From: Pavona decussata
Lineage: Eukaryota
Assembly (NCBI GenBank): GCA_977016875.1
Contig: CDRNST010000369.1
Coordinates: forward strand, 124,001-188,000
Length of the DNA: 64,000 bases
Direction of reading: 5' to 3'
The position numbers and the translations under genes are program-made. Positions 12,094 to 38,739 of the stretch are shown piece after piece; position 1 is the stretch's first letter, and each line of letters opens with the position of its first letter. The notes beneath the pieces were generated by a model, which saw only the letters and a program-made list of their open reading frames with translations, was not told the DNA's origin and searched no databases.

Positions 12094-12709
12094 TTAACTC
12101 GAGTGCATATCCATTACGGGCTGTGACATTGACAACACATTTTCAGAGGAAATTAAAGTGGGTGAAGTTTGCGTGGAAGGTATAAGCTGTGATCCTGGAT
12201 GTCCTGGATGACCCGGGTGACCGGGATGATGGGGATGTGCGTGGGGGTGCCCCGGTGGGGGCATCATCATGGCATGTGGATGTCCAGGGATGTACATTGG
12301 TTGGGCTTGGTGGACTGACGTTGGAGGCATTGGCGATCTGTAGGCGTGAGCGGGCATTTGGGCATGCATCGAATGTGGTCCTGCTGTCATAGCAGACATT
12401 GGAGGGATTGTGCCTACTCCACTTACTGAGGGATCGCCTGTTTGGATGTACCCTCTTGGTCCAAAATGTGCAGGCTGTGGAACTCCACCATCCATGTGGT
12501 AATTCGGATGTGGAGGCGGGTGATGCTGGTCTGGGTAATAGCCTGGGGGTGCTCCTGGAGGGCCAAATCTCGGCCCCGGTGAAGGAAGACCTTGACCTAG
12601 CGAGTTTTTCCGGCGTCTTGACTTGAATACCGTAACTACCGGTGACTTTCCTGCTCTGTTTGAGGCATCTATCATTGGCTGAACAATACGTCTTCTTGCG
12701 TTGATGAAC
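12094..12709 (-). CDS. Meis: Meis terminal exon 10: homeodomain helix 3 plus whole P/H/M-rich C-terminus ([34 protein letters not shown]...QPVMDMHSS*)
   Basis: tttggcag|G TTC; open frame to TAA at 12094; matches the ORF track entry 12094-12735. Confidence 0.92.
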
Positions 12710-15700
12710 CTGCCAAATAAATGCAACAGTTTCAACGTCCTGCTACTGAATATCTGTAGAAATTTGTTGACAAACGTTAAGGAAGGAAAGCGTGAGAAAG
12801 GAAGCTAAAAGCCAAAACATGACGAATCGAATGTCATAGAACCCTTCAATGGGTAACTTCTTTTCCTGATTAACAAAAAATGTTAATCCATCTCGCTTTG
12901 TTCATTTCTATGCGAGGTGATAAAGATTCTATACGCCTATGCTGTTGATTATATCTCATTGCGTGGCCTAAAAATCCACTCACCAGTTATTAACTTGTAG
13001 AATAGTGAGGCCGGTTTCTTGAGCCAAAGATCGCTTCTGTTCCTCGGATGGATACGGGTGCTAAAAGCAAGTTATTAAAAAATCGTTCACTCAGTGCAAT
13101 ACAAAGGCCATTGTCGTGAAGAACAATACATTTTATTTTAAAAAACCGTAACCACCAAGAAAAACTTTGGAATTACAGTAACAAACACTCCACACGTAGA
13201 TAAGAATTTATTTCACTCCAAGACAGGGGCGACAAACTTGAGTAAAATTAGGAAAACGCAATGTTAAATACTCTGATGATCAAATCATAAAGTGCATTTC
13301 TTGAGATCTGAAGGTACATTGCGTGAGGCGGGTGCAAGATGTTGCGAACTGGTGTTTTAACGATGAATGTTTCCACCAGAATAGGGCATTTTGAGTTTTC
13401 ATGCTTTGACGAATTTAAGCACCCCCGCAGTTTAAGAAGAGTTTGAGAATTCGCTCAATTGTTCGATTTATTGTTCCGTTCAGTTAAGAAAAGAAAACAA
13501 ATTGGAGCCATTTGTCTTTCCTCTAGACCTTTCTTCAAAGATTATTACGTCCGTTCTCGTGATGTGGATGAACTGCTTTAATTTCCCTGTTGTGGTCTGC
13601 TACTTACTTTGTAGCACTAAACAACCCTGCCACTTATTGTAAAATATTGTCATAAATTGCGTCAACAATGTCAATGCTGTTATCGACTAAACTTTTGTTC
13701 AGTTAAGCAAAACTAAAGAATCTCAAAAGAGGTTCATTGGTGTTTTGGAGTAGCGCTTACCGTTAAATGCTGAAAAAGCCATGCCTTCATGATATTGGTG
13801 GCGGCTTTAGGAAAGATCCCTCTCTTCTTTTGGCTTTTCTTTGACTGTTCATCATCCGTGTTGTCACCCGTACCATCTTCGGAGCCAACAGACGTATTTA
13901 ACGAAGGGTCTGAAATAAAGAGGCACGCCATGTTTTTTAAGAAAATACTGTCGTTACCGAGAGGCACTTCAAGACCTTATTCTGTTACACGTCGCATGTT
14001 CTGATAGAATATTGAAGTAGACAGTAATGGATACGACACGTTGTTAAGGCGATCACATTTGCAAGTTTTATCCCCTCATGCACTTGAAAAGATCTAATAG
14101 CGTGGACTGGCAGTTTTGCATACGCGGAGGATTAAGAGCGCTGTGAGAGCCTAATTTTCTTGTGAAGGCTTGAAGGTTAACACTCTCTGGGTGATGCCAA
14201 AGAGGAGAGGCTTATAGCAACACCTGCTGCTCTAGTTTCCTGTCAAAAACTCACAAAGACGTACTTGACACTTTTCCAAAGCTTTTCGCAATAGCGTTAT
14301 TGGTGTCAGTCAACACAAGACAACCCATTTCCTCCAAACACAAATTAGTGAAACCACTCCAAGTTCCCATCGAAAGGATGATATCGATAAGAGCGATGTC
14401 CTATAGCCTGTTGACTTAGACTTCTCGCCAAACAATGGAAAAGGCGGAACGGTTTTTATTTTGCCGGTTATTATATCGCAGTCGAAAAATATTTTGTTTT
14501 TCTGATACAAGGCCCCACCCTTTAAACGAATTTATGGACCGCTCGCCACCCCGTTCGCTTTTCTCACACGATTGCATGCCACATTATGCCCCTTACAACC
14601 GACAATGCAAATAGTGGGTGGAAAAAGGAGGAAATGTTAGCTCAGTGTCTTGGATTAAGTAAACATCACGAAAGAATGCTAAATACTCCAAGTCAAACTC
14701 CTTTTCTCTCGAAATGACATCTTTATGAAAATGAGGCGAATCACAAGCAAACATCTGGTCGCGAATTGAAAAGAGCTGAAGGCAGGCGAAACATAACATG
14801 GCGATGCCTCGAGCGCGCAAACCGAGAACCACACCGAAAGGCAATAAGGTTCGCGCTTAAGCCAACAGGATTAATAATGGCAGAAAAAATAAATCCTTCT
14901 TAGCGTACACGTATGTATTTGTCACACGAGTAGGAACATTCTTCACGCATCAATTAGGATTAAAAAGATCACTTTCACTCCTCTATTAAAAGCGGGGGCT
15001 TTGCCTTATTGATGAAATTTCATAGCGGATTCAAATTGGAATTTTTTAGCTTTTCTAACCGATAGAGGGTCTTGTGGAGGGTTTTTCTGGTTCAATACTT
15101 TGACAAGAAGCAATTAAGTTAATCGGACGCTATCAGCGCGTTTTATGGCTTTGTCTGCTATCTCTGAAAGCGCCAAAAACCAAGATGGGAAACTTGAGCA
15201 CGATTTAAACTACATTCAACAAGCCGATAAGACACCGAATAGCCGACCAACCTTAAAATCCGAGTCATTTGAACTTAATTAATTTGGTCAAGGAGCATTT
15301 CCCAGATAAAAGACTAGAGCTTTACCGCCCTGAGAAGAATTTACAACAGCTAGGTGCTTGAAACTTGACACTCCCAACACTTTGACGCTGACAAAATCCA
15401 TCAGGTTCACTTAAATGCTTACTGCAGCCCTTAGTCATACTAATTCATGTTACTCTTCTTTCACCTGTTATGCGCTCGTGACAGCAATAAAGCTCTTGAA
15501 ACTGTTTTCCATGAGGCATCTTCGAGAGGGCATAGAAAATACAAATTCCAAAACCACTTGACAGCCGAAGTCTTTGAAAAGTTAACGATTGAAGACGCAA
15601 AAGTGGACCTCCCAGAGAAGTGGCGTGCACTAATTTGGCAGAGCTCGTTCTTCTTTGTTTTTCACCTCTAGAATCCCGAAACTAAACCCCGGAGATTGTA

Positions 15701-18700
15701 GATATAAGTGACGACAAAAGCATAATGAATTATTGGTTGACACTACTTCAGGAAATTACTGGAGGAAATTGCAAGAGGCTATCTTGTCAGATTTATCAAA
15801 GAATCAAGAAATACTGTCAAGAATTAAGACAACGACAGAAAGGGATGGTACACATGCACTTAAATGAAAGGCAAGCTATTATCGGCTTCAATATTTTTAA
15901 AATACACACATTTTCCAACTTAAGTGAGCTATATGAAATCTTGACATCGAAAACTTAGAACGCATAACGAACGAAGCTCTTGTCAAAATTGTCCGAATAA
16001 CCTTATGTGGCCCAGCGGTTAATTAACATTTGGCTCGATTCCTGGGCGAAAAAAGTTGCTGATTGGTGGCGAAGCCAAAGCTCTCAAGAAAACCCTTGTT
16101 TCTGACAGGCAAAGACACTTTTATATATACTCTTTTATCCATTAGAAACGATTTCTTCAGTTTTCGCTTTTCAAAGGTTGGATGTTTGACACTTTGTAAA
16201 CGAAGATGGCACATCTGTTACTAGCTGTTAATTTTATCGTCTCTCTATTGTCAAAATAATTTCTTCAAACGATTTTTTCCTTTTGTTTGATCGCACAAGG
16301 CGAGTTGGGCTTTGAGAAAAAAATTTCATTCCGTTCGCTTGGCCTTAATTGTAACTTTTCTTTGACAATTAGTCATGTTTGTACTAGAAAATACTCTTGT
16401 CACTTCGCAATCAAAAGAAGGCGTTCACTAAGTGAGAAACACGCGATAAGTTATCCACGAACTTTTTACGGCTCATTTCGAAGCCTCATTATCGCGCCCT
16501 GTCTGTTTATAATTCGCAGGGATAAAAAAATCACGAAGCCACAGCGGAAAAAACATCCTGTGTTCATAATGTTGTGCCTGTGCTAGCAAACGACACATAA
16601 TGACTGCAACTTTATGCATATGAGAAAAGCGAACCGAAATTTACATATGGCTTATTCTCGTCGTAAAACGCGTAAAGTGATATTCTTTTTAATTACCAAC
16701 AGAAAGAAAGCCTTTGTGCAGCTGTGTCAACAGAGCCATAAAGCTTTCAACTCAATAAAAGGCCACAAGAATAGACGTAAGGCTGAACCAATAATTTCAC
16801 TGTTCAGTCCCACTCTTTATATAATTGCCAACGTGGATCACAACAATGGCCAACAGCTACTCATTTAGCATAATAAAGGAGAGATAAAACAGTACCCCCC
16901 GATAAATTCTCCTTTAGTGATATATTATTGAAGACATTATTAAAAAGACATCGAATACGGAAACAATTTAATAAAGAAGTGATAGAAATGTCGCTTTTAA
17001 TAAAAGCTTTTGCCATTTCCTCACCTTCCGGAGTCGTGGGCCCATCTACCCCAGAATTCGATGGCGGTCGAGATGATGATTGAGAGTTGGATCCCGAACC
17101 GGTCGCTTCATCTCCCTGCCCAGGCTGCCAGGTCTGAGGATTCGGTGGCTGGAGGGAACAAAGCGAAAGAAAACAAAATAAGTGATCGCGTGCTCTGCTC
17201 TCGTGCTATCTCACAAACCAAAAGAAAACAATTGGAATCCTTCGACAAAGTTGACATAAAAAGAATAAGAAAAGTAAAGCGCGGGTGTAAGAAATTTCGA
17301 CATTTAACGTAATTTTTGTCAGAAGTGATTGTGAAGGGATAATTGACGAAAATCCCACCTACGAGAAAATTGCCCGACGCGCTAATAACTCTATAAGTTC
17401 ATCCGCCAAATCTTTTGAGGCTTTGTATCCCGCACGCTGGATGTCTGAGAGCGCGCTTGTTTTACCTGTCTTAGGTGAAAACAGGTAACCATTGAGTTGT
17501 TAGCGTTTTCTGTCAGGTTCAAAACGTAGAGGTGTGAAATTGATCTTAGATAAATGTCCCAGTGTATGTGGCACCAAAGAACTTTTTTCAACACGTCAAT
17601 CCGCCAAAAAGGCTGTCTAGGTGCAATAAAAACTTCTAATAATGACAAAGCATAACGCCATCACAAGTGTCCAATTGGTGCTCGACTACATGACTTTTTG
17701 TGACTTCTGCTGACGGCTGGTTGTTATACGGGCCGTCGTTAATACAGTAACCACACAACACTTTATTTTTACTTCCCCATTGAGATCAATTCAACTCGTG
17801 GGACAATGATAGTTTTGAAAACATCGCCGCGGGGCGCAAGGTAAACACTGGCTAGTCAGCGTTCATCAATCAGGTTATGCGACCTCATCGGTAACCGTTT
17901 GCCGTTGAGACGCGCTGCAGGCTCTTCCTAATTCTATCGCGGGATTGCGAAGACTTAACGGTCATAGTGCGGCGGTATCATTCTCGAGACTTAATAACCA
18001 TTCATCCACTTAGATGATAATGTGATGTTGTGAGAGAAATTTACACCTCCAAAAGGCTAAGACCGTACGTGTATCGCCCACCAGATGAACAGCCACCAAA
18101 CGATAACCCAGCGCTAGCGTGGCGTTCGTTCGCAACTCATGATGACACACCAGGTTACAGTACCTGTGGTAGGGCGCTTTCTGGCGGTGAATCGATGTCC
18201 AGAGTATCGCTGTCGCTTCTGCTTTTGCCTATGTTTTCCTTCTCGTCCATAACAAGATCAATGGGCATTTTACCCTTCAGGCAGGAAATGTAGCGCTTAC
18301 AAAAGTTGTCGCACAGCTCGTGCACCTTGAGGGAGAAACAAGAAGTGTTGGATTTTCGTTGTTTTACAACGTGAACAGCATCCTGAATTTTAACTCAACT
18401 GTTAGCGTAAGCACCAAGAAATACCTTAAAAATCCATCGAATAAAAGCAAATGACAGCGCGAGATTAAATTTCTAACTAAAGATAAGGGTAATGTATGCA
18501 TTATGCAAATTCTCGTCTGAAAAATGTCTGGAGGTTCTTGCTTATATACACAGAACTGAGAGCATCTCGGATCTGATGGAAGTCGTGTTTTCTTGCAGCG
18601 TTATTTTTAATCGATAGGTCAACTTCATGGCTGACTTAAAACCACCACCCGAAACATCACAGGCTAAATAAACATTTTCGTACCTTTTCTAGTTCCAGTA

Positions 18701-20063
18701 GGTGAAATCTCAGGACTTGGATCGACTGAATCATCTAGAAACGAGAGAACCAAAACATCGGCCAAAAGTCAGATTCCTTCATGTTATGAGTCGTACAATC
18801 AACGGTATACAAGGCACTGAGTGACTGCTGTGCGTGTATAAATCAGCGTATAAAGGCGGCGAAGCATGTGGCAACATTTTGTGTTATTTAAATTCAATCA
18901 ACCGGGTTTGTATTAATATTTTAACACGTCCACCTTTGAAATGATAGCTTACGGTTTGGCCAAAGGAAAACAATACTTACCAGACTATCGACTTCATGGT
19001 TGGACGAGAAAATCGTCTTGTCGCTTCTGAACTAAAAACACAACAATAAACGGAAACCATTATGAGATTTCGTTCACTTGATCACCCTGTGTGTGACTTG
19101 GAAAAATATAAACTGTAGCAGTTCAAGAAACGATTTTGAACGATCACGTCAGACTAACATATCATTGATTGCCCGTCCCCTGCAGGCCTGGGGGAAGTCT
19201 AACTACTGAGCAATAAAGTGTAAATGTACCTGTTTCGAAAAAACCTGGATATCCTCGTTGAATGAAGCAGAGGAGCACACGTCTCCACCGACAGCTCCAG
19301 GTTCACGAGGAGTGCACGTCGCCAGCTCGCATTTCTCGAAGATAAGCGCGAGGAGAGGGAACAGCGAATGCCTGACAGTGGAATTAGAGCATACATGTTA
19401 ATGAATAGAGTTCAGTTAATAAGCGTTCATTTAATGCAGTGCAATGAAAAAGCCGGTGATCACGATCCTGTAGGGCTAACTAGCTAGATAGCTTGCTGGC
19501 GCTAGCTGTCTTGCTTGAAAGAAATTTTAATACGTGCGTCCTTGTAACTATCAACTGTAACTCAAGCTAATGCGAAGTTTGACAGCACCGGAGTGATCAC
19601 CGAGATTCACAGATAGATCAGTCGATCGTGAGTGAGTGATACATTTAGCATGACATGCAAATCAAATATCTGAGCAGGGAGCTGATCGTATGTAACGTAC
19701 GTACCCATATATTAACTCCTTATCTCTCTTGTGAATATCAGAAACGGCGCTCATTGCACTCGACACTCCTCCTCCTGCGGCAGGCGGGTGATGGTACGGT
19801 GATGTAGCACTGTTATGGTTCATATGCTGCATTGGAGCTCCAGAACGACTGTGATCGTACATAGAAGTTGCAACGTCCATTGAGTAAGGGCCCACTTCAT
19901 CATAGGGCTGCAAAATTAAACGATTTTGTCAGCTGTTTGCGAAGCGCTTCTGCAAATCAGTGCACAACAGCGGCGCTAAACAGGCAAAACTTCATGCGCA
20001 CACACCAGCACAGGCCGGCATCACGGGCAAACGGAACGCTCGGCTACTGACCCGTTGTGCCAT
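12094..20063 (-). CDS. Meis: Meis/homothorax-class TALE homeobox transcription factor, complete 10-exon CDS (528 aa): join(20063-20052,19907-19705,19371-19230,19031-18981,18734-18684,18325-18164,17148-17025,13909-13761,13060-12984,12709-12094)
   Basis: Manual splicing gives an open 1587-nt CDS with GT-AG introns and matching phases. It contains the MEINOX domain ([23 protein letters not shown]...[42 protein letters not shown]) and a TALE homeodomain ([61 protein letters not shown]). MAQR start and KMPIDLV indicate Meis rather than Prep/PKNOX. Confidence 0.97.
12984..13060 (-). CDS. Meis: Meis exon 9, TALE PYP loop ([26 protein letters not shown])
   Basis: gcttttag|CAC ... AACTG|gtgagt, 77 nt. 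Confidence 0.97.
13761..13909 (-). CDS. Meis: Meis exon 8, start of homeodomain ([10 protein letters not shown]...[23 protein letters not shown])
   Basis: tttatttcag|AC ... ACG|gtaagc, 149 nt. Confidence 0.97.
17025..17148 (-). CDS. Meis: Meis exon 7, S/P/G-rich linker ([41 protein letters not shown])
   Basis: ttccctccag|CCA ... GAAG|gtgagg, 124 nt; supplies the phase 0 to 1 bridge needed between exons 6 and 8 and contains the linker Trp. Confidence 0.88.
18164..18325 (-). CDS. Meis: Meis exon 6 ([30 protein letters not shown]...PESALPQ)
   Basis: ttctccctcaag|GTG ... CAG|gtactg, 162 nt. Confidence 0.96.
18684..18734 (-). CDS. Meis: Meis exon 5, MEINOX-B ([17 protein letters not shown])
   Basis: ttctag|ATG ... 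AAG|gtacga, 51 nt. Confidence 0.97.
18981..19031 (-). CDS. Meis: Meis exon 4 ([17 protein letters not shown])
   Basis: tttttag|TTC ... CTG|gtaagt, 51 nt; aligns with vertebrate IRAEKPLFSSNPELDNL. Confidence 0.93.
19230..19371 (-). CDS. Meis: Meis exon 3, MEINOX-A ([47 protein letters not shown])
   Basis: ctgtcag|G CAT ... AAACAG|gtacat, 142 nt. Confidence 0.97.
19705..19907 (-). CDS. Meis: Meis exon 2 (PYDEVGPY...KRDKELIYG)
   Basis: ttttgcag|CCCTAT ... TATGG|gtacgt, phase 0 to 2, 203 nt. Confidence 0.93.
20052..20063 (-). CDS. Meis: Meis exon 1 coding part (MAQR)
   Basis: ATGGCACAACGG|gtcagt; same 4-codon first exon as vertebrate Meis. No minus-strand ATG seen in 20064-20382. Confidence 0.9.
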
Positions 20064-20296
20064 ACGATGCGTATTCAGTCCGCTCCAGGGTTACGAGCCG
20101 CTCTGTGGAGGATTGTTATCGTAAAATTGCTGCAAATGTTTAATCCTGAATTGTGACAATCAGTTTAGGGCTAACACAGTTGGATAGCTTTCTAAACTTA
20201 CAACCCGTCAACTCAATGTAAGGAAAAGATGTGTACGGCCGTCAACACAACTAGTAACGAATTGTCAAGCCTGTCTCGTGGCTTTTGGCCACAGGT

Positions 20297-20306
20297 CTGT
20301 CAATCA
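20297..20306 (-). promoter_or_regulatory. PBX-MEIS/PREP composite site TGATTGACAG (proximal)
   Basis: Plus strand ctgtcaatca is a 10/10 match to the decamer, 234 bp upstream of the Meis ATG. Confidence 0.65.
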
Positions 20307-20607
20307 CTTTTCAAAATCTCTATGGACTCTTGTCACGTAATGACCGAGAGAGAGTTCGAAACTTGATCAGGATGGCAGAGAACATTTCGCCGCGAATTCT
20401 CTTTCGTGTGGTCGATTTCAGGCGCGCAAATTTATTCAGGAAGGACTTAGGGTAGTATTAAACTTGACAAGGCATCTCAAACATTAATAAGCTTTTTCTC
20501 TTAAAATAGAACAACGTAAAGTACTTTGAAGCGGAGGCAGAGCCATTAGTCAATTCTCCTGGGTATGTTCATAAAAACCAGCCACTTTTCAATAATACCT
20601 GGTGGAA

Positions 20608-20629
20608 CCAATTAGGTTGACGGACCAAT
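20608..20629. promoter_or_regulatory. Paired CCAAT boxes, likely Meis promoter
   Basis: CCAAT at 20608 and CCAATCAG at 20625, between the two decamers. Confidence 0.45.
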
Positions 20630-20953
20630 CAGAAGACAGCTCATCCGCCAAGCCAAATAATGTGTCTAAACATTTCAATTTCCATTGTCTAAGCCATCGT
20701 GGTTCTTTACGCAGGACGTGGGGCGTGTCGTTCCTTTCAATGGCATATAACAAAGTAATCGAGTGCAATTTTGAACGTGTTACTAAGCCTCAGATGAATG
20801 GCAGTTTATTAACAACACGCTCGAGGCTCGCTCAAGGCTTGGTTTCCGTGCTTGCATGTTTCGCATTTCACACCCCCATTTAATTAGAACACAAAACAAT
20901 TTACAAATGTCTCGATGCGTTGGGAAGTATGTAAAACAACTGATTGTCGTGTA

Positions 20954-20963
20954 TGATTGACAG
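20954..20963 (+). promoter_or_regulatory. PBX-MEIS/PREP composite site TGATTGACAG (second)
   Basis: 10/10 match, about 890 bp upstream of the Meis ATG. Confidence 0.65.
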
Positions 20964-23900
20964 CATTTCTAACACCTGCTGTTAATTGGCTTGACTGGGG
21001 AAGAGGGCTGCCCAAGACAACACAAAATGAACTTTAATAAATGTGTTAAAAGCTCAAATACAGCTGAAACAAAAAGAAATCTTACACGAAGCTAGCTGGC
21101 TTGCATTTGAAAATCGTTCTTTACAAATCAACTGAACTCTCAACCGGCACCATTCTTCTAACTCTTGGTTGCCGTTATTGAATTTGGTGTAAATTGAAAG
21201 TAATTTTGACGGATTGTATTTCACTATCAATTTCCTTGTCTGTTCGATAACGAAGAAACGTGACGCCTTTTGTCAAAAGCTGTCATGAGGGCGGAGTACA
21301 GCGACATTCGGGTGAAAACAACACATTCACTCGAATCTCCTTTAAACCGCATTAGATACTGTGTACTTGTCAGAGCTTGCTGTGAAGTCCATTGTCATTA
21401 AAGTGAGCTAAGGTTGCGCGCTTTTCAAAAACCATCCTCGCGCATAATCCTAAACAATTCAAGGTGATCGCGCTCGTGTGTTTACTGACAGGAACCGCCG
21501 CATGCCAGGCAATGTTTACGCGCTTGTCCTCCAAACGTCTGCCTGTCGTTTTGCAAGCTATTATCATCAGCACTCTTCAAAAGCTCGTTTACAACTACGG
21601 CAAGTGTCCTAGACTAAACGTTCTGTTGCCGCTTAATCTTCGAAGTATCTGATTTAGCCAGGTAAATTATATACCGAATACGTGATGTCGCGGGTATAAA
21701 GAGCCAGAGATGAACGCAGGGCTTGTGTGTATATTTAGCAACTGAAATTGGACACTGCTGTATTCTCCCGGAGGGTGAGGAAAAATATTCCTGAATAGCC
21801 TCGAATCAAGAATTTAATTAAATAGCGCTTTTTGTAATATGATTTTTCGAATCATAAACGCGCGATTTTCGCGTTCCTTCGATTGCTTATGGGCTGAAAT
21901 GAACAACAAAACAAAACACTCAACGGCACGGCAGGCATCGCGACCAGATGGCGCGAGCATTAGCATTGAAAGATGAAGTTATGACAAATTTGTGAGCATA
22001 ATTTTTACCATTATCAAATTAATCCCAGGCGATGTGAATTTTTCGAGTTTAAAAACTCTCTCAATACGAGGAACTGTTATGCAATTTATAAACACACTGC
22101 TTAGCTTTTTTGGCATGCACATCGGGTTTCATTTTTTACAATAAACAGAGCGAACGTGTAATTTAAGAAGCTTTTGCTATGGCTTTGGCCGATGTGTTTT
22201 CGTATGCGGTACGAAAACATCACATCTGATCACTAAAATTTTGTTTGTCACTAAAGATGTCGAACATTTCAGCATTCAGTCAAGAAAGTGACATTCTGGC
22301 GAAAACCTTCATCCAAAAAGCTGACATCTGCTAATTAGATCCTCGTAGTTATCTCACAACGCAGGACATAATCATTAGCCACATGAAAATAATTTTAAAA
22401 CCATTACGCACCTCAATGTTTTACAAAGGAAGAGATGAAAAATTTTCAGCTCAAGAAACCAACTTTGCGGACAAGCAAGGAACGTAAATAATTTAAATAA
22501 ATAACTTGGGTGGCTTGAAATTAAACAGACAGCATTTTTGAAACGACAGAATGAAAACCGCAAATCGCATTCCTTTCTAGAAAAAGTTTCCGTCAAAATA
22601 ACTTATCTGCGCTACAGTGCGGGCCATTGTTATCAGGCCCGATATTTTTCCATTCATCAGAATGTAAGAGGGTTGTTTTCTGTTGTTTATGGTTAGACAT
22701 GTTGTTTTGCTTAAACGCATAAATGAAAGACAGCAAATGAGAATGTTCGACAGGGTGATAACTGCTCAACTATTAGCCACGAAAGGTTGATGTATGTGAC
22801 AAGCGAGACTTGAAAACGGCGCAAGTTTTGACACGTTATAATAACACATGGACTGATGACCCGTTTGATTCGTCTGGTCACGCATGGCTAAAGTGCAGAA
22901 AGTACTTCCATCTTGCCCACCACAAACTTGCCACGGGTTTCGATTTCTTTCGATTCGTTCTTCTCTCTTAAAATATTTGGCAGTTCTACTTTGAACACAG
23001 TTTCTGCTCTTTGAGGAAATTAAACGATTATTCGAATTAGCAATTTCTGCTAAGGTTGTAGTGTTAACAAAATGTTAAACAGAATAAACAGCGTGTTTCC
23101 AAAATTTCAACAAACCTGCGCTCTCGACCCTTTCAGTTGGGCGCGAGGCCAAGGTTTACCATGCAAGCAGACATTTCAACCGTGTAATAAAAATTAACAT
23201 AGATTGGTAAATGTTTCCTTTGTGGCTGATAGTAAAGTCGCTCAACACTAAGCGTCTGAAAACGATTGGTGACAACACGATATCCACACTTGACTGCCCC
23301 TGAAAAGACTGTTTGAAGTTTGTATATCATGCATGAAATTACGATGACTCTCCAATATGCACAATAAAATCTGTCATTACAAGCATTGGCCAAGTGTCAG
23401 TTTTGTCATGCTGTTTATTTCTTTCGCTTACGCTTTTCTTTGACGCCGTGTGGGGGAAAACAGTGCTGTTTGTGTTATCGGATTAAAGAACCTTTGCCCC
23501 TTTAATAGCCATTAAAAACTGCCTGCGCATTTAGAAGTCGGCATTCAACAAGACGGAAAACGACACAACAGCCTTGATTTGTCTCAAAATAAAGCCCATA
23601 CTTCAATTTCACAACAAAGGCATGACAACTATGTCGTATCCATTTAAAAGCTTTACAACACTTGGTGGTTAGCAAACGGGTAACGTATCTCGGGATTAGC
23701 TATGGCATCAATCAAACGCGTTTCAGAGGTCTGTGCGTGCGAACGAAGCCTTCTTTGAAGTCCAGATACTAGGAATTATAGCCTGCACGCCGACATGGAT
23801 GATTAGAAGGCTCTGGAACTTGTGACAAGACAGTAGGTCAGTCGTATTTTTCCTTTCAATCTGGGAAGCAAGCTTTGGAAAACATCTGGCTAAAGTAAGC

Positions 23901-26900: not shown

Positions 26901-29900
26901 TGAGCCAATATCGCCATAAATTTTACATTAAGTGATGCGTCTTCATTATAATCCCTAAAAGGGGAATGAAAAAGAGTGCACATCGATTTTGAATAGCACT
27001 TCAGCGAACAGCGCTCCGGCGTTCCTCCTTGTAACTCTTGCATCTGTGTCTTCGCCCTAGCTCGTTTTCTGATTTTTCTTATCATGCCTTGCGCTGTAGA
27101 AACTACCTTGAAGTAAGTAAATAAAAAACACGCGGTCCTTTTCAAGCGTCTGAGTTCGCTTTTCAAGTATAGTTTTATTCCATTATTCGACTGTCGATGC
27201 CGCCATGACTATTAATATGCCGTGTGTCGGTTGTGTTGACTTAAATTTGAAAAGGCCTTGAGTTATAAGCTGTGACATTTCTTCAGAGCACCGATCAATC
27301 GGCACATTTACCGCACAATCACAAAGTGCCCGAGACTCGGAGAGTGTGTGTATTTTAAATCAACGAACCTCGCGAGGCATTCTGTCGGTTTTTTCGTGTA
27401 GAAGAGAAGCAGAGGAAAACTTTGAAGACATCGAAAAATATATGACGCCGGTGTTGTTTACAGAAGGAAAAAAAAAAAAAGGAAAAACACTAATGGAAAG
27501 ATCACGCTCATAAAAAATGGCAGTCTTAAAGAAAATGTTAGCGGCACTACGTAAATTACACGAATTCGCGACGGAGGGGTTTCGCTGTCTTTATTCCAAT
27601 GCAGCTTGGTCGGAGGCAAGACTTTTTCGGATCAAATTGGAGAGCTTAAAGCATCAAATATGGACTAATTATTCTGAAGTACAATCTAGTTTATTCCCTT
27701 CACAGTGGGCGCGAAATGGCTTGGCGGCGTATATTTCCTTTTCTTGAAGTGTTTAACTGGATAGGCAGTCCAAACGTTGTATGTTTCGAGAGGTTGGTCA
27801 TTTGATAGCGATGGAAAGCGAACTAGCTGTCCAAAGTGTCCACATCTGTCCATCAGAACACGGGCTTGAAGAAAGCGGATGAAAGGCGACCGAAAACAAA
27901 CTTAACATACCAAAAGCACCAAGCAAATGTGGAAAATATGAATTCGCTTTTACACTGATTGCTCTTTGTACAACCCTTTCACCTACAATAATCTTGCAAT
28001 CAACTGGAACCTGTGCACACTGCTTTTTAACTTTTGAAGCATAGTTGAGATATTTTTTCTCAACCAACATGTATTGGTAGTAAGACTGAGTCAACTTTTG
28101 TGAATCGATCGATGCTACCAAAGGACTTAGCTGTTCTCAGCTATTCATCTTGAAATCGCAACAGCGACACTGATGTGATGAAGAAATAACCATAAAGTCA
28201 GGTAAATAAGAATTCCTTTTGGCCCATAATGGGTTGTTTGGTCTAGGCAATGCCAGTAACTCAAGCTAGCACTCGTTCTCGAGTACAACTGATTTTAGCT
28301 GGAGCTCCATCAAAGTACCTCGAACTGAGTTCGCTTACATGATGAACAGTGCTCTAGAGCAAGTCAATCTAACATTAATCATTTTTGAATGCTTTGTCAG
28401 CTTAGTGTTTATTAGTCTGTGCTTTGTGTACTATAAACCTGTAAAAGATTTAAGTAATTTTGTTTTACTTTGTTGAGGTAATCCGGTGGATGTTTCGGCT
28501 CAAACTTGCTAATTTTTCCACCATCTTGTCTTCTTTACACAAGAGGGATCTACGCCATGCGTCACGGAACCATTTCCCGAAAAATTCTTGATCATAGACA
28601 ACAAGTGATACTTCGACAATTGTACTTTAGAGTTGTACGCTCAAGTGTGTAATGGACCCAACGAGGGAAAAACCGTAAATCAGTATTATCCGACACCAGA
28701 ATATTATGAAAATGTTATCCATCTTTTCATTTCACGAGTCAGTTACGCGCTTTTTAATGCCCGATATAATACCACCACAACAAGGATAAGCATTAATAAA
28801 GAACATTTTGCGAGGGTAATTGCCTCCTCGCGTTGCGGGAAGTTTTCGTGTTATCCAAATATCATGTAAACAATTTTTGCTTTGCCGATTTAGATGCCAT
28901 CTTAAGACTCACCCCCTTGTCGTCGAACTGTACTGAAGATTCTGTTAAACTTTGCAATGCTTGAAGATCTTGAAAAGGAAGTATCGACATTTTGTTACCC
29001 TGCTTAATAGGTATCACTATTACAGAAGGTTTTTCTCTTGAGCCGTAATATTTGAAGTCTGGTGGACGACTGCCGCGCTCCCAACGCACGGAGGGTACTA
29101 CTGGAATTGTCGTGACTAAGAGGCGATTGGGTAGCTTGAATCAAGGCCCCGCTGGGTCCTGTCGAATCCCCGTTCAGAGCCCGATTGAACTCTTCTAAAG
29201 AAGGTGAATCTCGAGAGACATTTATAGCTCTTTGGGCTTTCCATTTATATTCTACGTATTCGCTGATGAAGCATGTTGCTTTTGATATGTTTTGGTTTCG
29301 AAGCTGTTGAAGAGAGACTTCGCCCATCTGTTAATTCAAAATATATTGGAGTGATTTGCTTTCGTATTCATTTTTTTTAAAGTCTTCTGTTTCTTTCAAT
29401 AATTTTTATCGAAATCTTGTTTCGCTAAAAATGGGTCAACAACCGAGATCAAATGCCTCAGCTGTTGCCAAGTTTTCTTGTCGTAAACACTTTCAGGTGA
29501 TGACTCTTCACGCGAACTCAAAAACCGCAATTGGGAGTAAGAGTCCATTGACAAATCATGAGCAAAGAATTCGAGTGTCTTCTACTAATCACCTTATAGT
29601 TTTATTTTTGTCTGGGATTTGAGCAATGTTTTGTGAATTCCTAAAATTATTTTTGAAGAACTGTTGGATTTATCACGCATGATACAACTAGTCATGCAAT
29701 TTTTGGTTAATAAACTGATCCTTCCCTCCGACATGACATGAAATTCTAAGGTGCCTGTGTTTTGAAAGTTCGATAAGAGAACCTACTGGTGGTTTGGACT
29801 GGAATATTTTAGACTTACACGTAAACAGGTCGGTAATTTTCTTCTTTACCAAATGACCCTGATAAACGCTCAAGAAAGGGAGGAAGGAATCTTGAGTGAC

Positions 29901-32900
29901 TGCTACCGGTAAACTTGCCTCTCGATGTCTCCTCTCCAACGCCCAGTTTTGAATCTTTAATAAGGAGCATTCTCTAGATAGCTCGTGTTGTTTTCTCGTT
30001 TAAAATATCATAGCAAACGGATTTTCAATATTATTACGAGCGAAGGAAACTTAAACACAAAGATGTTGGGTATTTGGGAAATTACTCGTGCTGCCAGTTA
30101 AACGTTTGATACTTGAACTGCTTGGAGTGTGAATCTCAGTACTTTTGTATTCCCTTAAGTGAAACGCTGACTCATGCAACATATTTTTAGGAAACTGGAA
30201 TTTTTGGATGAAATCCAAAAGTTTAAAAAATTCAAGTGAAACTGGTGAGAATGACCCTTTTCAGGAGTGTTTTCTGTTTTAATTTTCTCAAGACGAAACT
30301 GTAAAACATTTGTCGGATGTGTACTTTGGCCTACTTAGGAAGTGAACCTTTAATCCACGTCAGCGAAAAGAGAACATTTCAAAATGTCTTTGTCTCATCT
30401 CTGTAGACAGCTATGCTAGTACCAGTTGGTTCAAATAATGTGGAGGCTTACATTTAACCAGTAGCACTGTTATAATGTAATCTTTTGCCTGTTGTGTGTG
30501 CTTTTTAATTTTGGAGTATTTTACTTGGTGTGCTTTGGGTTTAACTGTAAATCCGTTTTCAAAGTGACTGTCGGATAGTTTGGCAGTGTTTTCGATATCA
30601 GATAGTCATCTCACTCGAAGCATTTAAGCTATCAAAATACTTCCAAAAACACCGTCTTGTTAGCGAATCTACTCGCCTTCTTCTCAGAACTTATCCAAGG
30701 CATCGGATGTGCGAAACCTCCTGATTACAGTTACTGTGACATCGGTATCCTTAAATTCAAGTGCACGTGTGAAAACAGGAATCATATTTGTAGCCAATAA
30801 GTCGATGAAAACACTTTAAAAGCTTAAGCAGGAGTGTATTGTGTTGGGATGCAACGTTCGGATCGTGTTTCAAGATAAAACTTCGGCAGCAAAAGAAAGC
30901 TGTGTATTTAGCTGGTCACCACGTGTATATGAAAAACACCCTTGATTGATATCTCTTTTCACAGGCAGGATTTCATCCATGCGCCTCCACTTCATATCAA
31001 ACGTTTTGGCGCCAGAATTGTTCCTGACTTCAGTTAGTGTCTATTTCTTTTCCTCGGCGCCTGGTTAGAGGTTTACTGGTTTAGTCTGTTCGCTTCTCAA
31101 GCATCGATAAATAAAAATTTTGTTTATTTAATGAAGAATACCTTTGTTTCTTTGTAGTTTAGATTAAAAATACAGAATCACGACAGCTTTGAGATGTTTT
31201 AGGATGCAATCTCGGTCTATGAAACAGCTTTCTTTCCTTTTTTCTTTTGCCGTAAACCCTTCTTCTTCTTGATTCAAAATCTCTAGTCTAGTAATTAATT
31301 TGATTTTATCTTTTGAGTCCGAACGAAATCCTCTATAAAGGTAGAACATACAAACGCCTAAAGCTATCGAGCGTTACTGTTACTCGTTATGTCACTCGTT
31401 TGTCAATAATTTTTCTTAATTTGAAATTTCCCCCCAAAACATTTATATCTGAAGAGTACCATGAACTCAATATGAGAACAAAACAATACGGAGAAATCGT
31501 CTTCTTCGTCTGAGCTCTAGTGACCGAGTAAGTTAGACATGACTTAGAGAAAAATTCGTCCATCCGAATTAGAGTTTGCTTTATTTTCATCTTGAAAGAT
31601 CTCGACGATACTTCCAGTCATTCAAATTCGTAGACTCAGTCTAGGGAATTGGCTAAACAGAAATGTTCATGTAGTCGGGATAGTTTACAAATGTTCATGT
31701 CTCACTGAGTAAAACTGAGAAATACTGCTTGTGGTCGAAGTCTCTCTTGTCAACAGAAAGAACGTAAATACACTTGTCAGAGTAATGGTGTTTGGTCATA
31801 ATGTGAAGGCGTGTCTTTGGGTTAAGTTTATTTTTTCTTCATAACCTTACTCTTTATGGAAACTAGAAATCGTTTTCAAAGAAAACTATGTCAAGGAATT
31901 GTGATTTTTGGGTGACGTTTGGGTCCAGATGAAGTGTTTTTACTTCGGAATTCTCTTGTGTTGAAATTGCGTGAGTCGCCTAGAGGGCCAAATAAGAGAA
32001 CCATGGTGAATGAAAGGATGAATGTACAGATCTATTGGTGAGGAATACGTATGCGAATATCGAGGTAGTACACGAAAACAAGAAAGCCAAACTGGTCGTA
32101 GTTATGTTTGCGAATTCAATTCGTAGAAGCTAGCGCTGGTTAACTTACCACTCGACTGAGTGAAAGTTCTGCTTTGAAGTTTTATTGTTTGAAGGAAGAC
32201 CAAAATGGAATCACACTGGTCGCTGCAATCTTTATTCGCCTCCCTACATTTTAAAATGAGTTTACTATTCGAGTCCTGAGGGGAAAAATTACTTGACTGT
32301 CCTTCAGTTGAACTGATCAAGTGTTTTCGATCTCCTTCAGTCGCCTGACACTGAATTTTACTTTGTTAGTATGAATGGAAGCCTTGAAGGATGAGAAAAA
32401 AATAGACATCAACAAATTTACGGGAAAAAAATGCAAACTCCGCGCTGCCGTCTAGTCTGGGTCGCTCTTCCTTTTTTCCAAGATACGAGCTACTTTTGGT
32501 TTTGCGGTTGACTTAGCTTTTCTCGTTGGGAGGAGCAGTTTACCATCTCCTTGTCGTTGCTGTCGGATGATTGCGATATGATCTAAAAATTCGTTTTCAT
32601 AAGTCAAAACAACTTTAGCTCGTTTGAATATCTCTGATAAACAGTCTAACCTCGAACTATCTGCGATAAATTTGTCTTAAACCATTAAGCTCTTGAGAGT
32701 GACAAAAAATATATTGAGAAAAATTTTTAACATTTCGCTTCGAAAAAATCGAAAACTAAGCATCCTGCGGAAGTACTGTTCGACACTCCTTACTTCAATG
32801 TTCACATTTGAGCATTTCACTAAAAGTACGAGTCGCAGTATAAATGACTCAATGAGAGCACGTTTCTACAGTGGCAACTCTTTTGCAATGCTTTCAGCTT

Positions 32901-37920: not shown

Positions 37921-38739
37921 TTATAGAAAAGAACAATCCCGCGAAAGAAATTTCATGTCTAAAGTGTTACTCTAAAATAGAAAACATTGCTGCCCAATGT
38001 GAGTTTACATTTTCCTTTCTCTTTCTAAAAGTTACGACCCACGAATGTAATTATTATGTTCCGTTTTCGCTGGCATCGTCGTCGTCTCTACTCAAGGTCC
38101 CTAACATCCCTGGTAAAGACCCGCAAACGATCGTGGAAAAAGACTACATTTAAAATATTTTTTTAATACTAATTCTTTGCGTTTCCCTGTAAAAACTGAG
38201 CAACAGAGTGAGCTGTAGCGTACTAGGTCAGAGTAATTACGTTCATTAGGTTATTTTAAATTATTTGACATTAACATCTACGTAACATACCGTTGTTCCA
38301 TTTTTCTTGGGAGAAAATTCTTTTGCTGTTAACCTCCTGTGAACTAGTTCTTCGCATCGCTGAACAAGGTCTTTGCAGAACCAATCACTGCTGCCTTTTC
38401 CCAGCGGGTAGGAAAGGTCTTTAAAATGACTGAACACTTCTTTGGGACCAACGGGAGGAATGTTAAGATACATGGCGTATGAACCAGGAACCGCTTATTT
38501 ACCTGGGGGTAAAATAAACGATATCAACAGACATTATGGCAGGGGTATCCAGATGTACATCTGGCAGCCACTTATTTACCTGCGACAAGCGGGGAACATA
38601 AGGTACATTTATCAAGACAAGAGCAGAAAGCTATTCAAGAAGACACTTAACCTAGTAGAGTTAGTCCAACAGCTTGGACCTCAGACATTCGGTCTTGCTC
38701 AACCCACAGTAATGAAAAGGTTTGAATTCCTATTGTTGC

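Follow-up and report, generated by a model that had tools for sequence, protein, structure and literature searches.

Two perfect copies of the decamer TGATTGACAG lie at the 5' end of a coral Meis gene, and comparison with other species places both under strong purifying selection across Anthozoa. They are predicted to be PBX-MEIS/PREP dimer sites and, on balance, probably form an ancient TALE feedback or cross-regulatory node. That the sites are under functional constraint is close to certain, and it is quite likely that this constraint acts on the DNA via TALE dimers; the binding itself, which protein partners Pbx and which way the effect runs are predicted. The decamer is known as the dimer site of Pbx with Prep or Meis (PMC6023610, PMC4395233), and the definition of the DECA motif was taken from the same two papers. 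Both copies have the sequence so defined, with a Pbx half-site (TGAT) adjacent to a Meis/Prep half-site (TGACAG). A scan of the window (the whole 64-kb stretch of DNA that was analyzed, which contains no N) found exactly two perfect copies, at the positions that an earlier note had given for the only two:

20297-20306, minus strand: proximal DECA site, TGATTGACAG on the sense strand of the gene (motif scan, conservation, transcripts)
20954-20963, plus strand: distal DECA site, in antisense orientation, 657 bp farther upstream than the proximal DECA

The gene, on the minus strand, is the Meis orthologue; orthology analysis bore out this identification by the earlier note, and the stretch that carries the decamers is the proximal 5' regulatory region of the gene. 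Its exons were placed as follows:

20052-20340, minus strand: exon 1, minimum extent, with the 5'UTR and the ATG (20063-20061), encoding MAQR (RNA contig splice joint, transcript 5' ends)
19908-20051, minus strand: intron 1, 144 nt, GT..AG (splice joint 19907/20052 in an RNA contig)
12097-19907, minus strand: the other Meis exons, with the Meis_PKNOX_N domain, the homeodomain and a long last exon

These assignments correct the local gene model with respect to the start codon, the short first exon and the alternative 5' exons. Exon 1 has 12 coding nucleotides, and the MAQR start that it encodes is common to Pocillopora, Xenia and bilaterian Meis proteins; the Lottia counterpart of intron 1 is about 135 nt long. 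A start at 19913, taken from the ORF list, was rejected, as it is a TTG within exon 2 and the RNA joint and the MAQR reading place the start at 20063. Hidden coding sequence was likewise rejected: four local ORFs were without a Pfam match, and the alignment contained indels that were not multiples of three.

Nine transcript contigs have their 5' ends within 20139-20340, and there is no upstream ATG between -322 and the start codon. The main Meis transcription start, inferred from assembled contigs and upstream-ATG depletion and not from CAGE, is probably near 20340-20390. The proximal DECA starts 243 nt 5' of the Meis start codon and probably lies at about +40 to +90 relative to the main transcription start, just inside the 5'UTR; the distal DECA would lie about 600 bp upstream of that start, in a region of normal upstream-ATG density. 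Of the two decamers, both of which the earlier note had placed at the promoter, the proximal one is therefore not upstream of the start but within the transcribed 5'UTR. One spliced RNA contig spans both DECA sites, reaching 21080. Meis has at least three alternative 5' exons, of which the exon 1 stretch is the most proximal. RNA contigs were used for splice and transcript evidence, and conservation was taken from the loci of other species.

Both sites were retained in other corals and in Nematostella, the comparison that the earlier note had called for. The 9-mer TGATTGACA is invariant at both places in seven anthozoans, inverted and 632-657 bp apart, and it is intact at both sites in Nematostella (contig L020, 30747 and 31399), Actinia and the octocoral Xenia. 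Both decamers are exact, and keep their orientation and spacing, in an ENA coral, Pocillopora verrucosa, Stylophora pistillata, ten coral metagenome contigs and L097. The distal decamer is exact in scleractinians, Nematostella and L097, and Actinia and Xenia keep the 9-mer; in Xenia the distal 9-mer is kept though its flanks have diverged.

The sites are part of a larger non-coding block of 1.2 kb that is conserved between corals and sea anemones. Invariant columns make up 57.6% of 1377 aligned nt among 4 scleractinians, 33.8% among 6 hexacorals and 20.7% among 7 anthozoans, and only four runs of at least 8 nt are invariant across the 7 anthozoans, two of which are the DECA sites. The 1.2-kb module has 12 invariant blocks of at least 8 nt, two of them being the decamers. 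The block and the other elements in it are as follows:

20110-21340, minus strand: deeply conserved non-coding block, comprising the proximal promoter and the exon 1 5'UTR (multispecies alignments)
20625-20629, plus strand: CCAAT box (sense strand TGATTGG), invariant in 7/7 anthozoans
20608-20612, plus strand: second CCAAT box, present in 5/7 anthozoans, lost in Nematostella and Xenia
20985-20989, minus strand: third CCAAT box, 20-23 nt from the distal DECA
20721-20729, minus strand: GC box GACACGCCC, Sp/KLF-like, 8/9 nt invariant in 7/7 anthozoans
20239-20249, minus strand: invariant 11-mer TGTGTTGACGG in the 5'UTR (anthozoan alignment)
20263-20267, minus strand: single TGACA core, invariant in 7/7 anthozoans

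The decamers do bracket the first two CCAAT boxes, as had been noticed before, and the third shares with an E-box (CAGGTG) a block that hardly varies among hexacorals. The interval 20150-21500 holds 11 TGACA cores, namely, the two in the decamers and nine others, so the earlier count of about nine extra cores was exact. Their density there is 8.1 per kb versus 3.4 per kb for the whole window, in the top 3% of windows of the same size. Because each site is embedded among many conserved motifs, part of its conservation could be shared constraint.

The proximal site extends beyond Cnidaria. It lies 228-251 nt before the Meis ATG in anthozoans, Lottia, the mollusc-like L139 and the crustacean-like L112/113/120, and the decamer is exact at that distance in corals, L097, Xenia, Lottia, L139 and L112/113/120. 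In the bilaterian sequences, the exact sense decamer is at -247 (Lottia), -244 (L139) and -228/-230 (L112/113/120), and L139 shares with Lottia the layout of three additional TGACAG sites. The chance of a decamer at that place is ~5e-5 per lineage for a 50-nt target. The word "ancient" in the earlier note therefore holds, because the proximal decamer occurs in molluscs and a crustacean-like lineage, deeper than had been proposed. A blastn comparison of 21400-20050 with the Lottia upstream region gave no match better than E = 0.06; what coral and Lottia have in common is limited to the site, the way it points and how far it is from the ATG. Since the flanks do not align between the two, this is not an alignment-based conserved non-coding element (CNE) of cnidarians and bilaterians. 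The proximal decamer, with up to 2 mismatches, was not found in the 5'UTRs of mite-like, one mollusc-like and other arthropod-like transcripts, indicating that it is dispensable in some lineages. We tentatively consider the proximal DECA to be a cis-element that dates from the eumetazoan ancestor, has been retained for more than 600 million years and wired Meis into a TALE self- or cross-regulatory circuit predating the cnidarian-bilaterian split, with the inverted site an anthozoan addition; this is a possibility that falls somewhat short of probable.

The coral genome encodes all three of the proteins in question, Pbx, Meis and Pknox, so that genes for DECA-binding proteins are present. PBC-domain exons of the Pbx gene are at C151:972234-978522, and the Pknox (Prep) orthologue, all of whose named relatives are PKNOX, is at C117:1462484-1466158. 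Upstream of Pknox there are two exact decamers within 5.5 kb, one of them ~340 nt before the ATG, and upstream of Pbx there are three 9-mers within 4.1 kb (P ~0.002 at the genome rate for each gene):

C117:1462054 and C117:1457039: decamers upstream of Pknox
C151:968148, C151:968467 and C151:971597: 9-mers upstream of Pbx

We propose that both decamers at Meis are TALE heterodimer sites for Pbx and a MEIS-class partner (Meis or Pknox/Prep), set in a proximal promoter and 5'UTR module with an NF-Y-type CCAAT and an Sp/KLF-type GC box between them. Dimers at both sites, together with NF-Y, would keep the Meis promoter open or poised, and Meis transcription would thereby be tied to the level of nuclear Pbx-Meis or Pbx-Prep complex. 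Meis as the partner would give positive feedback, and Pknox as the partner would give cross-regulation; the two are not exclusive. Pknox-Pbx may or may not be a relevant binder, with the case evenly balanced, and true autoregulation, with Meis itself a relevant binder, is somewhat doubtful. The sequence is compatible with either partner. In mouse and zebrafish it is mainly Prep-Pbx that uses the decamer, at promoters (PMC4395233, PMC6023610), and Meis prefers other motifs, which weakens the case for "auto" regulation. Because the coral has Pknox and the vertebrate decamer is bound mainly by Prep-Pbx, cross-regulation is at least as likely as autoregulation. TALE factors bind TALE genes in mouse (PMC5580710), and Nematostella Pbx and Meis dimerize and bind bilaterian consensus probes (PMC3957477).

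The proximal site does fall within the transcript, at a constant distance from the AUG, and this could equally point to a role at the RNA level. UGAUUGACAG, ~240 nt before the AUG, would then act in the mRNA as a 5'UTR signal for translation, stability or localization, read by an RNA-binding protein, and the match to a TALE site would be coincidental or secondary. The proximal site is indeed within transcript contigs of Pocillopora (L026) and the crustacean-like L112/113/120 and within the spliced coral contig, and the spacing of 228-251 nt to the AUG is held across phyla. The 5'UTR block that follows the proximal DECA is the best-conserved part of the module (80% identity, coral versus Actinia), and the TGACA(G) cores in the 5'UTR are mostly in the same, sense orientation in corals and molluscs. 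We nevertheless regard an mRNA role as unlikely. The second copy is equally strictly conserved, is inverted and lies upstream of the main start, which fits DNA rather than RNA recognition, and Pknox and Pbx have this word upstream as well. RNAalifold supported no fold, its covariation term being +1.29 and compensatory support being absent, and the Meis 5' region had no Rfam match at E up to 1, so it does not have the marks of a structured RNA. A long-range RNA helix between the inverted decamers was also discarded; the pairing ends at 10 bp, and the change in Nematostella is uncompensated. We know of no RNA-binding protein with this motif.

Recognition of the DNA by Pbx with a MEIS-class partner stays the preferred reading, but the sites could in principle be read by other homeodomain factors, either TGIF, which binds CTGTCAA, or a monomeric MEIS-class protein at TGACA, acting as a repressor or competitor. 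The decamer includes the TGIF core, there are several conserved single TGACA cores nearby that lack a TGAT half, the mouse Meis3 enhancer needs TGIF motifs and TGIF occupies TALE genes (PMC5580710). A monomer site would not need TGAT, however, and at both sites the TGAT half has been kept just as strictly as the TGACA half, in 7/7 anthozoans and in the bilaterian copies; this explanation is therefore quite improbable.

The background frequency of the decamer bears on whether its occurrence at Meis is accidental. Shuffled sequence gave a mean of 0.17 copies of TGATTGACAG, with two or more copies in 1 of 100 shuffles, in agreement with the earlier estimate of 0.15 copies per 64 kb; that estimate is nonetheless below the real genome rate of 0.49 per 64 kb (4577 copies genome-wide, compared with 678 for the reversed control word). 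At the genome rate, two copies anywhere in 64 kb are not unusual (Poisson P ~0.09), and two copies within one named 1.35-kb stretch have a P of ~5e-5. About half of the sampled genomic copies (19/40) lie in interspersed repeats of five families, and tight decamer clusters in the genome hit list are copies of interspersed repeats. The genome-wide excess of decamers was therefore dropped as a signal of selection. The decamers at Meis are not repeat-borne, their flanks being unlike any of the five repeat families in the sample. It is conservation at orthologous places, and not the count in the window, that puts the sites beyond chance. Chance matches, or passive passengers of a conserved promoter that have no function themselves (in one variant, the terminal inverted repeats of a relic transposon), could account for two copies per 64 kb at the real genome rate, for the repeat-borne half of genomic copies and for the perfect 10-bp inverted repeat that the two sites make, but are very hard to credit when both sites are among the four longest invariant runs across Anthozoa, the distal 9-mer persists in Xenia where its flanks do not, the proximal site holds its place in three phyla whose flanking sequences do not align, and the complementarity ends at 10 bp with flanks that match none of the sampled repeat families.

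Very few non-coding features are common to cnidarians and bilaterians, and for hardly any of them can the factor that reads it be named. The decamer at Meis has a well-defined reader and is found at the same place before the Meis start not only in corals, sea anemones and an octocoral but also in molluscs and a crustacean-like animal. If the ancestral reading is true, the proximal DECA is among the oldest positionally conserved transcription factor sites known in animals, and it supports the suggestion that DECA binding was the original function of TALE dimers, predating the partnership with Hox (PMC6023610). Confirmed binding would mean that mutual control of TALE homeobox genes was already in place in the cnidarian-bilaterian common ancestor and would offer a compact 1.3-kb promoter, testable in Nematostella, for DECA function. 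In the 2018 study of early DECA occupancy in zebrafish, the authors state that no biological function had yet been assigned (PMC6023610). No mention of the sites at Meis or of their conservation was found in the literature searched, PMC3957477 included.

The closest known counterparts are the Prep-Pbx DECA sites of mouse embryo and ES cells (PMC4395233) and of the zebrafish blastula (PMC6023610). These have the same 10-bp word, and like them, the Meis sites are at the promoter and transcription start of a developmental control gene, with CCAAT and an Sp/Klf-like GC motif in the same element. Unlike them, the predicted target here is Meis itself, in a cnidarian; the pair is inverted and ~650 bp apart, and the nearest CCAAT is at 20-23 bp, not 11. 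DECA, CCAAT and a GC box in one conserved promoter module also recall the DECA-CCAAT composite read by TALE, NF-Y and Sp2 (bioRxiv 10.64898/2026.02.16.706105). The CCAAT spacing of 11 ± 1 bp, in a fixed orientation, that the composite requires is present at neither Meis site: the gap between the distal DECA and the nearest CCAAT, 20-23 nt, varies between species, and no CCAAT is within 30 nt of the proximal DECA. The co-occurrence with CCAAT that had been pointed out thus stands for the invariant box between the sites but not at the vertebrate spacing, and the Meis module is at best a looser TALE and NF-Y promoter rather than a DECA-CCAAT composite.

In the mouse Hoxa1/TALE auto- and cross-regulatory network (PMC5580710), TALE-type sites are likewise found at TALE genes, as DECA-type words are found upstream of coral Meis, Pknox and Pbx. 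In mouse, ChIP and reporters have validated the elements, most of which are distal enhancers with HOX-PBX bipartite sites; the coral sites are promoter-proximal and are predicted from sequence and conservation to be dimer sites. The promoter sites of Nematostella NvHoxB and NvHoxC (PMC3957477) are similar in that they belong to a cnidarian TALE system with bilaterian-like DNA specificity and proposed auto- or cross-regulatory loops; those are predicted Hox/Pbx/Meis sites at Hox genes, and Hox-Pbx sites, unlike those at Meis.

A further point of comparison is the class of CNEs common to cnidarians and bilaterians. Unlike these elements, the Meis promoter has no more in common with bilaterians than a single 10-bp site and the place of that site relative to the start codon. 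Such CNEs were reportedly described by Royo et al. in PNAS in 2011 and by Clarke et al. in PLoS Genet in 2012. Like them, the proximal DECA would be a regulatory feature, here of Meis, retained since before the cnidarian-bilaterian split.

Exactly two perfect copies of the PBX-MEIS/PREP heterodimer decamer, TGATTGACAG, were recovered by a pattern search of the 64-kb window, which is without any N. Both lie upstream of the start codon of Meis, a minus-strand gene, and flank a pair of CCAAT boxes:

20297-20306, minus strand, proximal decamer, perfect copy
20954-20963, plus strand, distal decamer, perfect copy
20608 and 20625, CCAAT boxes

The region 20150-21500 contains 11 TGACA cores, two within the decamers and nine others, a density of 8.1 per kb versus 3.4 per kb window-wide (top 3% of same-size windows). 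Since these counts and positions match, the earlier description of two decamers, a CCAAT pair, and nine more TGACA cores was accurate. The accompanying chance estimate of 0.15 copies per 64 kb needs correction: the whole 602-Mb genome holds 4577 decamers, versus 678 copies of the reversed control, or 0.49 per 64 kb. Shuffled windows contained a mean of 0.17 decamers, with two reached in 1 of 100. Per Mb, the genome carries 7.6 decamers and 21.7 copies of the 9-mer TGATTGACA. At the decamer rate, two copies anywhere in 64 kb are unremarkable (P of about 0.09), while two in one named 1.35-kb stretch are rare (P of about 5e-5). The case for the Meis sites is thus based on conservation and not on copy number. 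About half of the sampled genomic copies (19/40) were repeat-borne, in five interspersed-repeat families. At least five such families carry a perfect decamer, each at a fixed internal position (examples of members are L048/L049/L055/L057/L058/L075, L050/L052/L059/L062/L068, and L060/L061/L063/L064), and these transposons may spread TALE-type sites.

In profile searches of the coral's own genome, exons for the Meis_PKNOX_N and Homeobox_KN domains were located between 12980 and 19385, minus strand. The full exon series, ending with an exon at 12097-12735, came from stop-to-stop reading together with tblastn searches using named Meis proteins of cnidarians; searches with the gene itself used individual exons. 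In an oligo-dT RNA run of a related coral, contigs compared over 5901 nt of the window revealed canonical minus-strand introns, including 19908-20051; one spliced contig of 1075 nt joins 19907 to 20052 and extends to 21080. The frame directly above 20052 reads M-A-Q-R, then GT, and MAQR is also the N terminus of Pocillopora isoform X3, Xenia X2, and Meis of Haliotis, Patiria, and Glandiceps. Because of this splice joint, frame, and shared N terminus, the Meis start codon is placed at 20063-20061. A start codon at 19913, entered as "M" in the ORF list, was rejected, as the codon is TTG. Intron 1, which follows the MAQR exon, is strikingly alike in length in the coral (144 nt) and in the mollusc Lottia gigantea (about 135 nt; L032, 9866-10000). 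In Nematostella exon 1 (L020, about 31630-31645), the MAQR counterpart ahead of the splice donor is ATGGCCG, which is not in frame with exon 2; there the short coding start appears to have been lost, leaving exon 1 wholly 5'UTR. Two further first exons were matched in the window:

38396-38473, minus strand, alternative Meis first exon, N terminus of Pocillopora isoform X1 (58% identity over 26 aa)
28913-28990, minus strand, alternative Meis first exon, N terminus of Pocillopora isoform X2 (62% identity over 26 aa)

This brings the 5' exons of Meis to at least three, across about 18 kb, and the decamer region lies at the most proximal of them, within the first intron of the longer isoforms.

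Orthologous loci were fetched from an ENA coral (L013), Nematostella vectensis (L020), Pocillopora verrucosa (L021), Stylophora pistillata (L022), Actinia tenebrosa (L023), and the octocoral Xenia (L024). Both decamers were exact, with orientations and places unchanged, in the three other scleractinians, as well as in ten coral metagenome contigs and the more distant contig L097. In Nematostella, the distal decamer is exact and the proximal site reads TGATTGACAA; in Actinia and Xenia, the 9-mer is retained at each site. The distance between the two sites is 632 to 657 bp in all anthozoans compared. An unanchored five-species alignment placed the decamers within a ∼1.2-kb block (roughly 21340-20110) in which coral and anemone share many long identities. 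When seven species were aligned over 1377 nt with the decamer sites as anchors, only four invariant runs of at least 8 nt were found: both 9-mers, GACACGCC, and TGTGTTGACGG. At the Xenia distal site, the 9-mer is conserved and the surrounding sequence is not. The CCAAT box at 20625 does not vary among the seven anthozoans; the aligned part holds ten TGACA cores, of which three are unchanged in seven species and another four in five or six. Two 5'UTR runs invariant in six hexacorals, of 19 nt (20185-20203, minus strand) and 10 nt (20136-20145, minus strand), matched no nameable motif.

Conservation extends beyond Cnidaria. In Lottia, an exact sense decamer precedes the ATG by 247 nt, TGACAG also occurs at −288, −144, and −124, and the decamer flanks did not align to the coral. 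Two other lineages were found by scanning metagenome contigs with an alignment of the conserved third exon. L139, a genomic contig with an exon 2 that aligns to mollusc proteins only, has an exact decamer at −244 and TGACAG at −295, −149, and −130. Three marine transcript contigs closest to rhizocephalan barnacle and insect homothorax proteins (L112, L113, and L120) have it at −228/−230, inside the 5'UTR. The corresponding anthozoan distance is 234 to 251, and the chance of a decamer in a 50-nt target is about 5e-5 per lineage. With two mismatches allowed, the decamer was absent from transcript contigs that were mite-like (L089, L095/96, and L099), mollusc-like (L110), and otherwise arthropod-like (L100, L101, and L119), which points to repeated loss of the proximal site.

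Nine MAQR-isoform transcript contigs, four Acropora-type and five Pocillopora, assembled from various public runs, have 5'UTRs of 77 to 279 nt, with their 5' ends mapping to window positions 20139-20340, and only the longest includes the proximal decamer. No ATG occurs from −322 to the start codon; farther upstream, the usual density of 20 per kb is found. The ATG-free stretch and the contig ends suggest a main transcription start near 20340-20390. Relative to such a start, the proximal decamer would fall between about +40 and +90, the two CCAAT boxes between about −230 and −290, and the distal decamer between about −570 and −620. A minor longer transcript is the probable source of the spliced contig that extends to 21080 (depth of 30 versus 231 for coding exons). 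RNA-run contigs of a related coral also cover 22426-23329 (depth of 7) and 23469-23785 (depth of 27), upstream of the conserved block, and may be Meis isoforms, another transcript, or DNA carry-over.

A proximal site that is transcribed, keeps its distance to the AUG, and has nearby TGACA(G) cores mostly oriented like itself may act at the RNA level. However, the distal copy, equally conserved, is inverted and precedes the main start, and the decamer or 9-mer word recurs at Pknox and Pbx; Rfam gave no family match, and covariation was not found in the 5'UTR alignment. Reading of the sites by TGIF or by monomers would leave unexplained that the TGAT half, too, is invariant. Hidden coding sequence was rejected, given frame-breaking indels in the alignment and no Pfam match for the local ORFs.

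Binding by a TALE dimer is the reading we prefer, and the coral genome encodes Pbx and a second gene of the MEIS class, all of whose named relatives are PKNOX. Their upstream sites are as follows:

Contig C117, 1457039 and 1462054, exact decamers in the 5.5 kb upstream of Pknox, each antisense to it, with one at about 340 nt from the Pknox ATG
Contig C151, 968148, 968467, and 971597, 9-mers in the 4.1 kb upstream of the first PBC-domain exon detected for Pbx

Each set has a P of about 0.002 at genome rates; these are post hoc observations in this coral alone.

Both Meis decamers are almost certainly functional and ancient, as judged from their conservation, and are most likely TALE-dimer sites. 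That much of the proposed TALE autoregulatory loop stands, with Meis as its own binder a candidate only; Meis may be controlled by its own product or by Pknox-Pbx. The decamer is the in vitro Pbx-Meis/Prep dimer site (PMC4395233, PMC6023610). In mouse, it is the main Prep1-Pbx1 motif, mostly at promoters, whereas Meis1 favors an octamer (PMC4395233). In zebrafish, Prep/Pbx occupy it from the blastula stage onward, where it adjoins CCAAT and Sp/Klf-like motifs, and its binding was suggested to be perhaps the original TALE function (PMC6023610). Unlike the DECA-CCAAT composite, with 11 ± 1 bp between the two elements (2026 preprint, bioRxiv 10.64898/2026.02.16.706105), the coral Meis sites do not have this spacing. 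Nematostella Pbx and Meis dimerize and bind bilaterian consensus sites, with regulatory loops proposed for Hox genes only (PMC3957477). A comparative study of Meis gene structure excluded 5'UTRs (PMC3140891), and in the literature searched, no description of decamer sites at Meis was found for any non-vertebrate. Mouse TALE genes are bound by TALE factors, with auto- and cross-regulation (PMC5580710). DECA sites and TALE feedback are already known, and it is the conservation that is unusually deep here.
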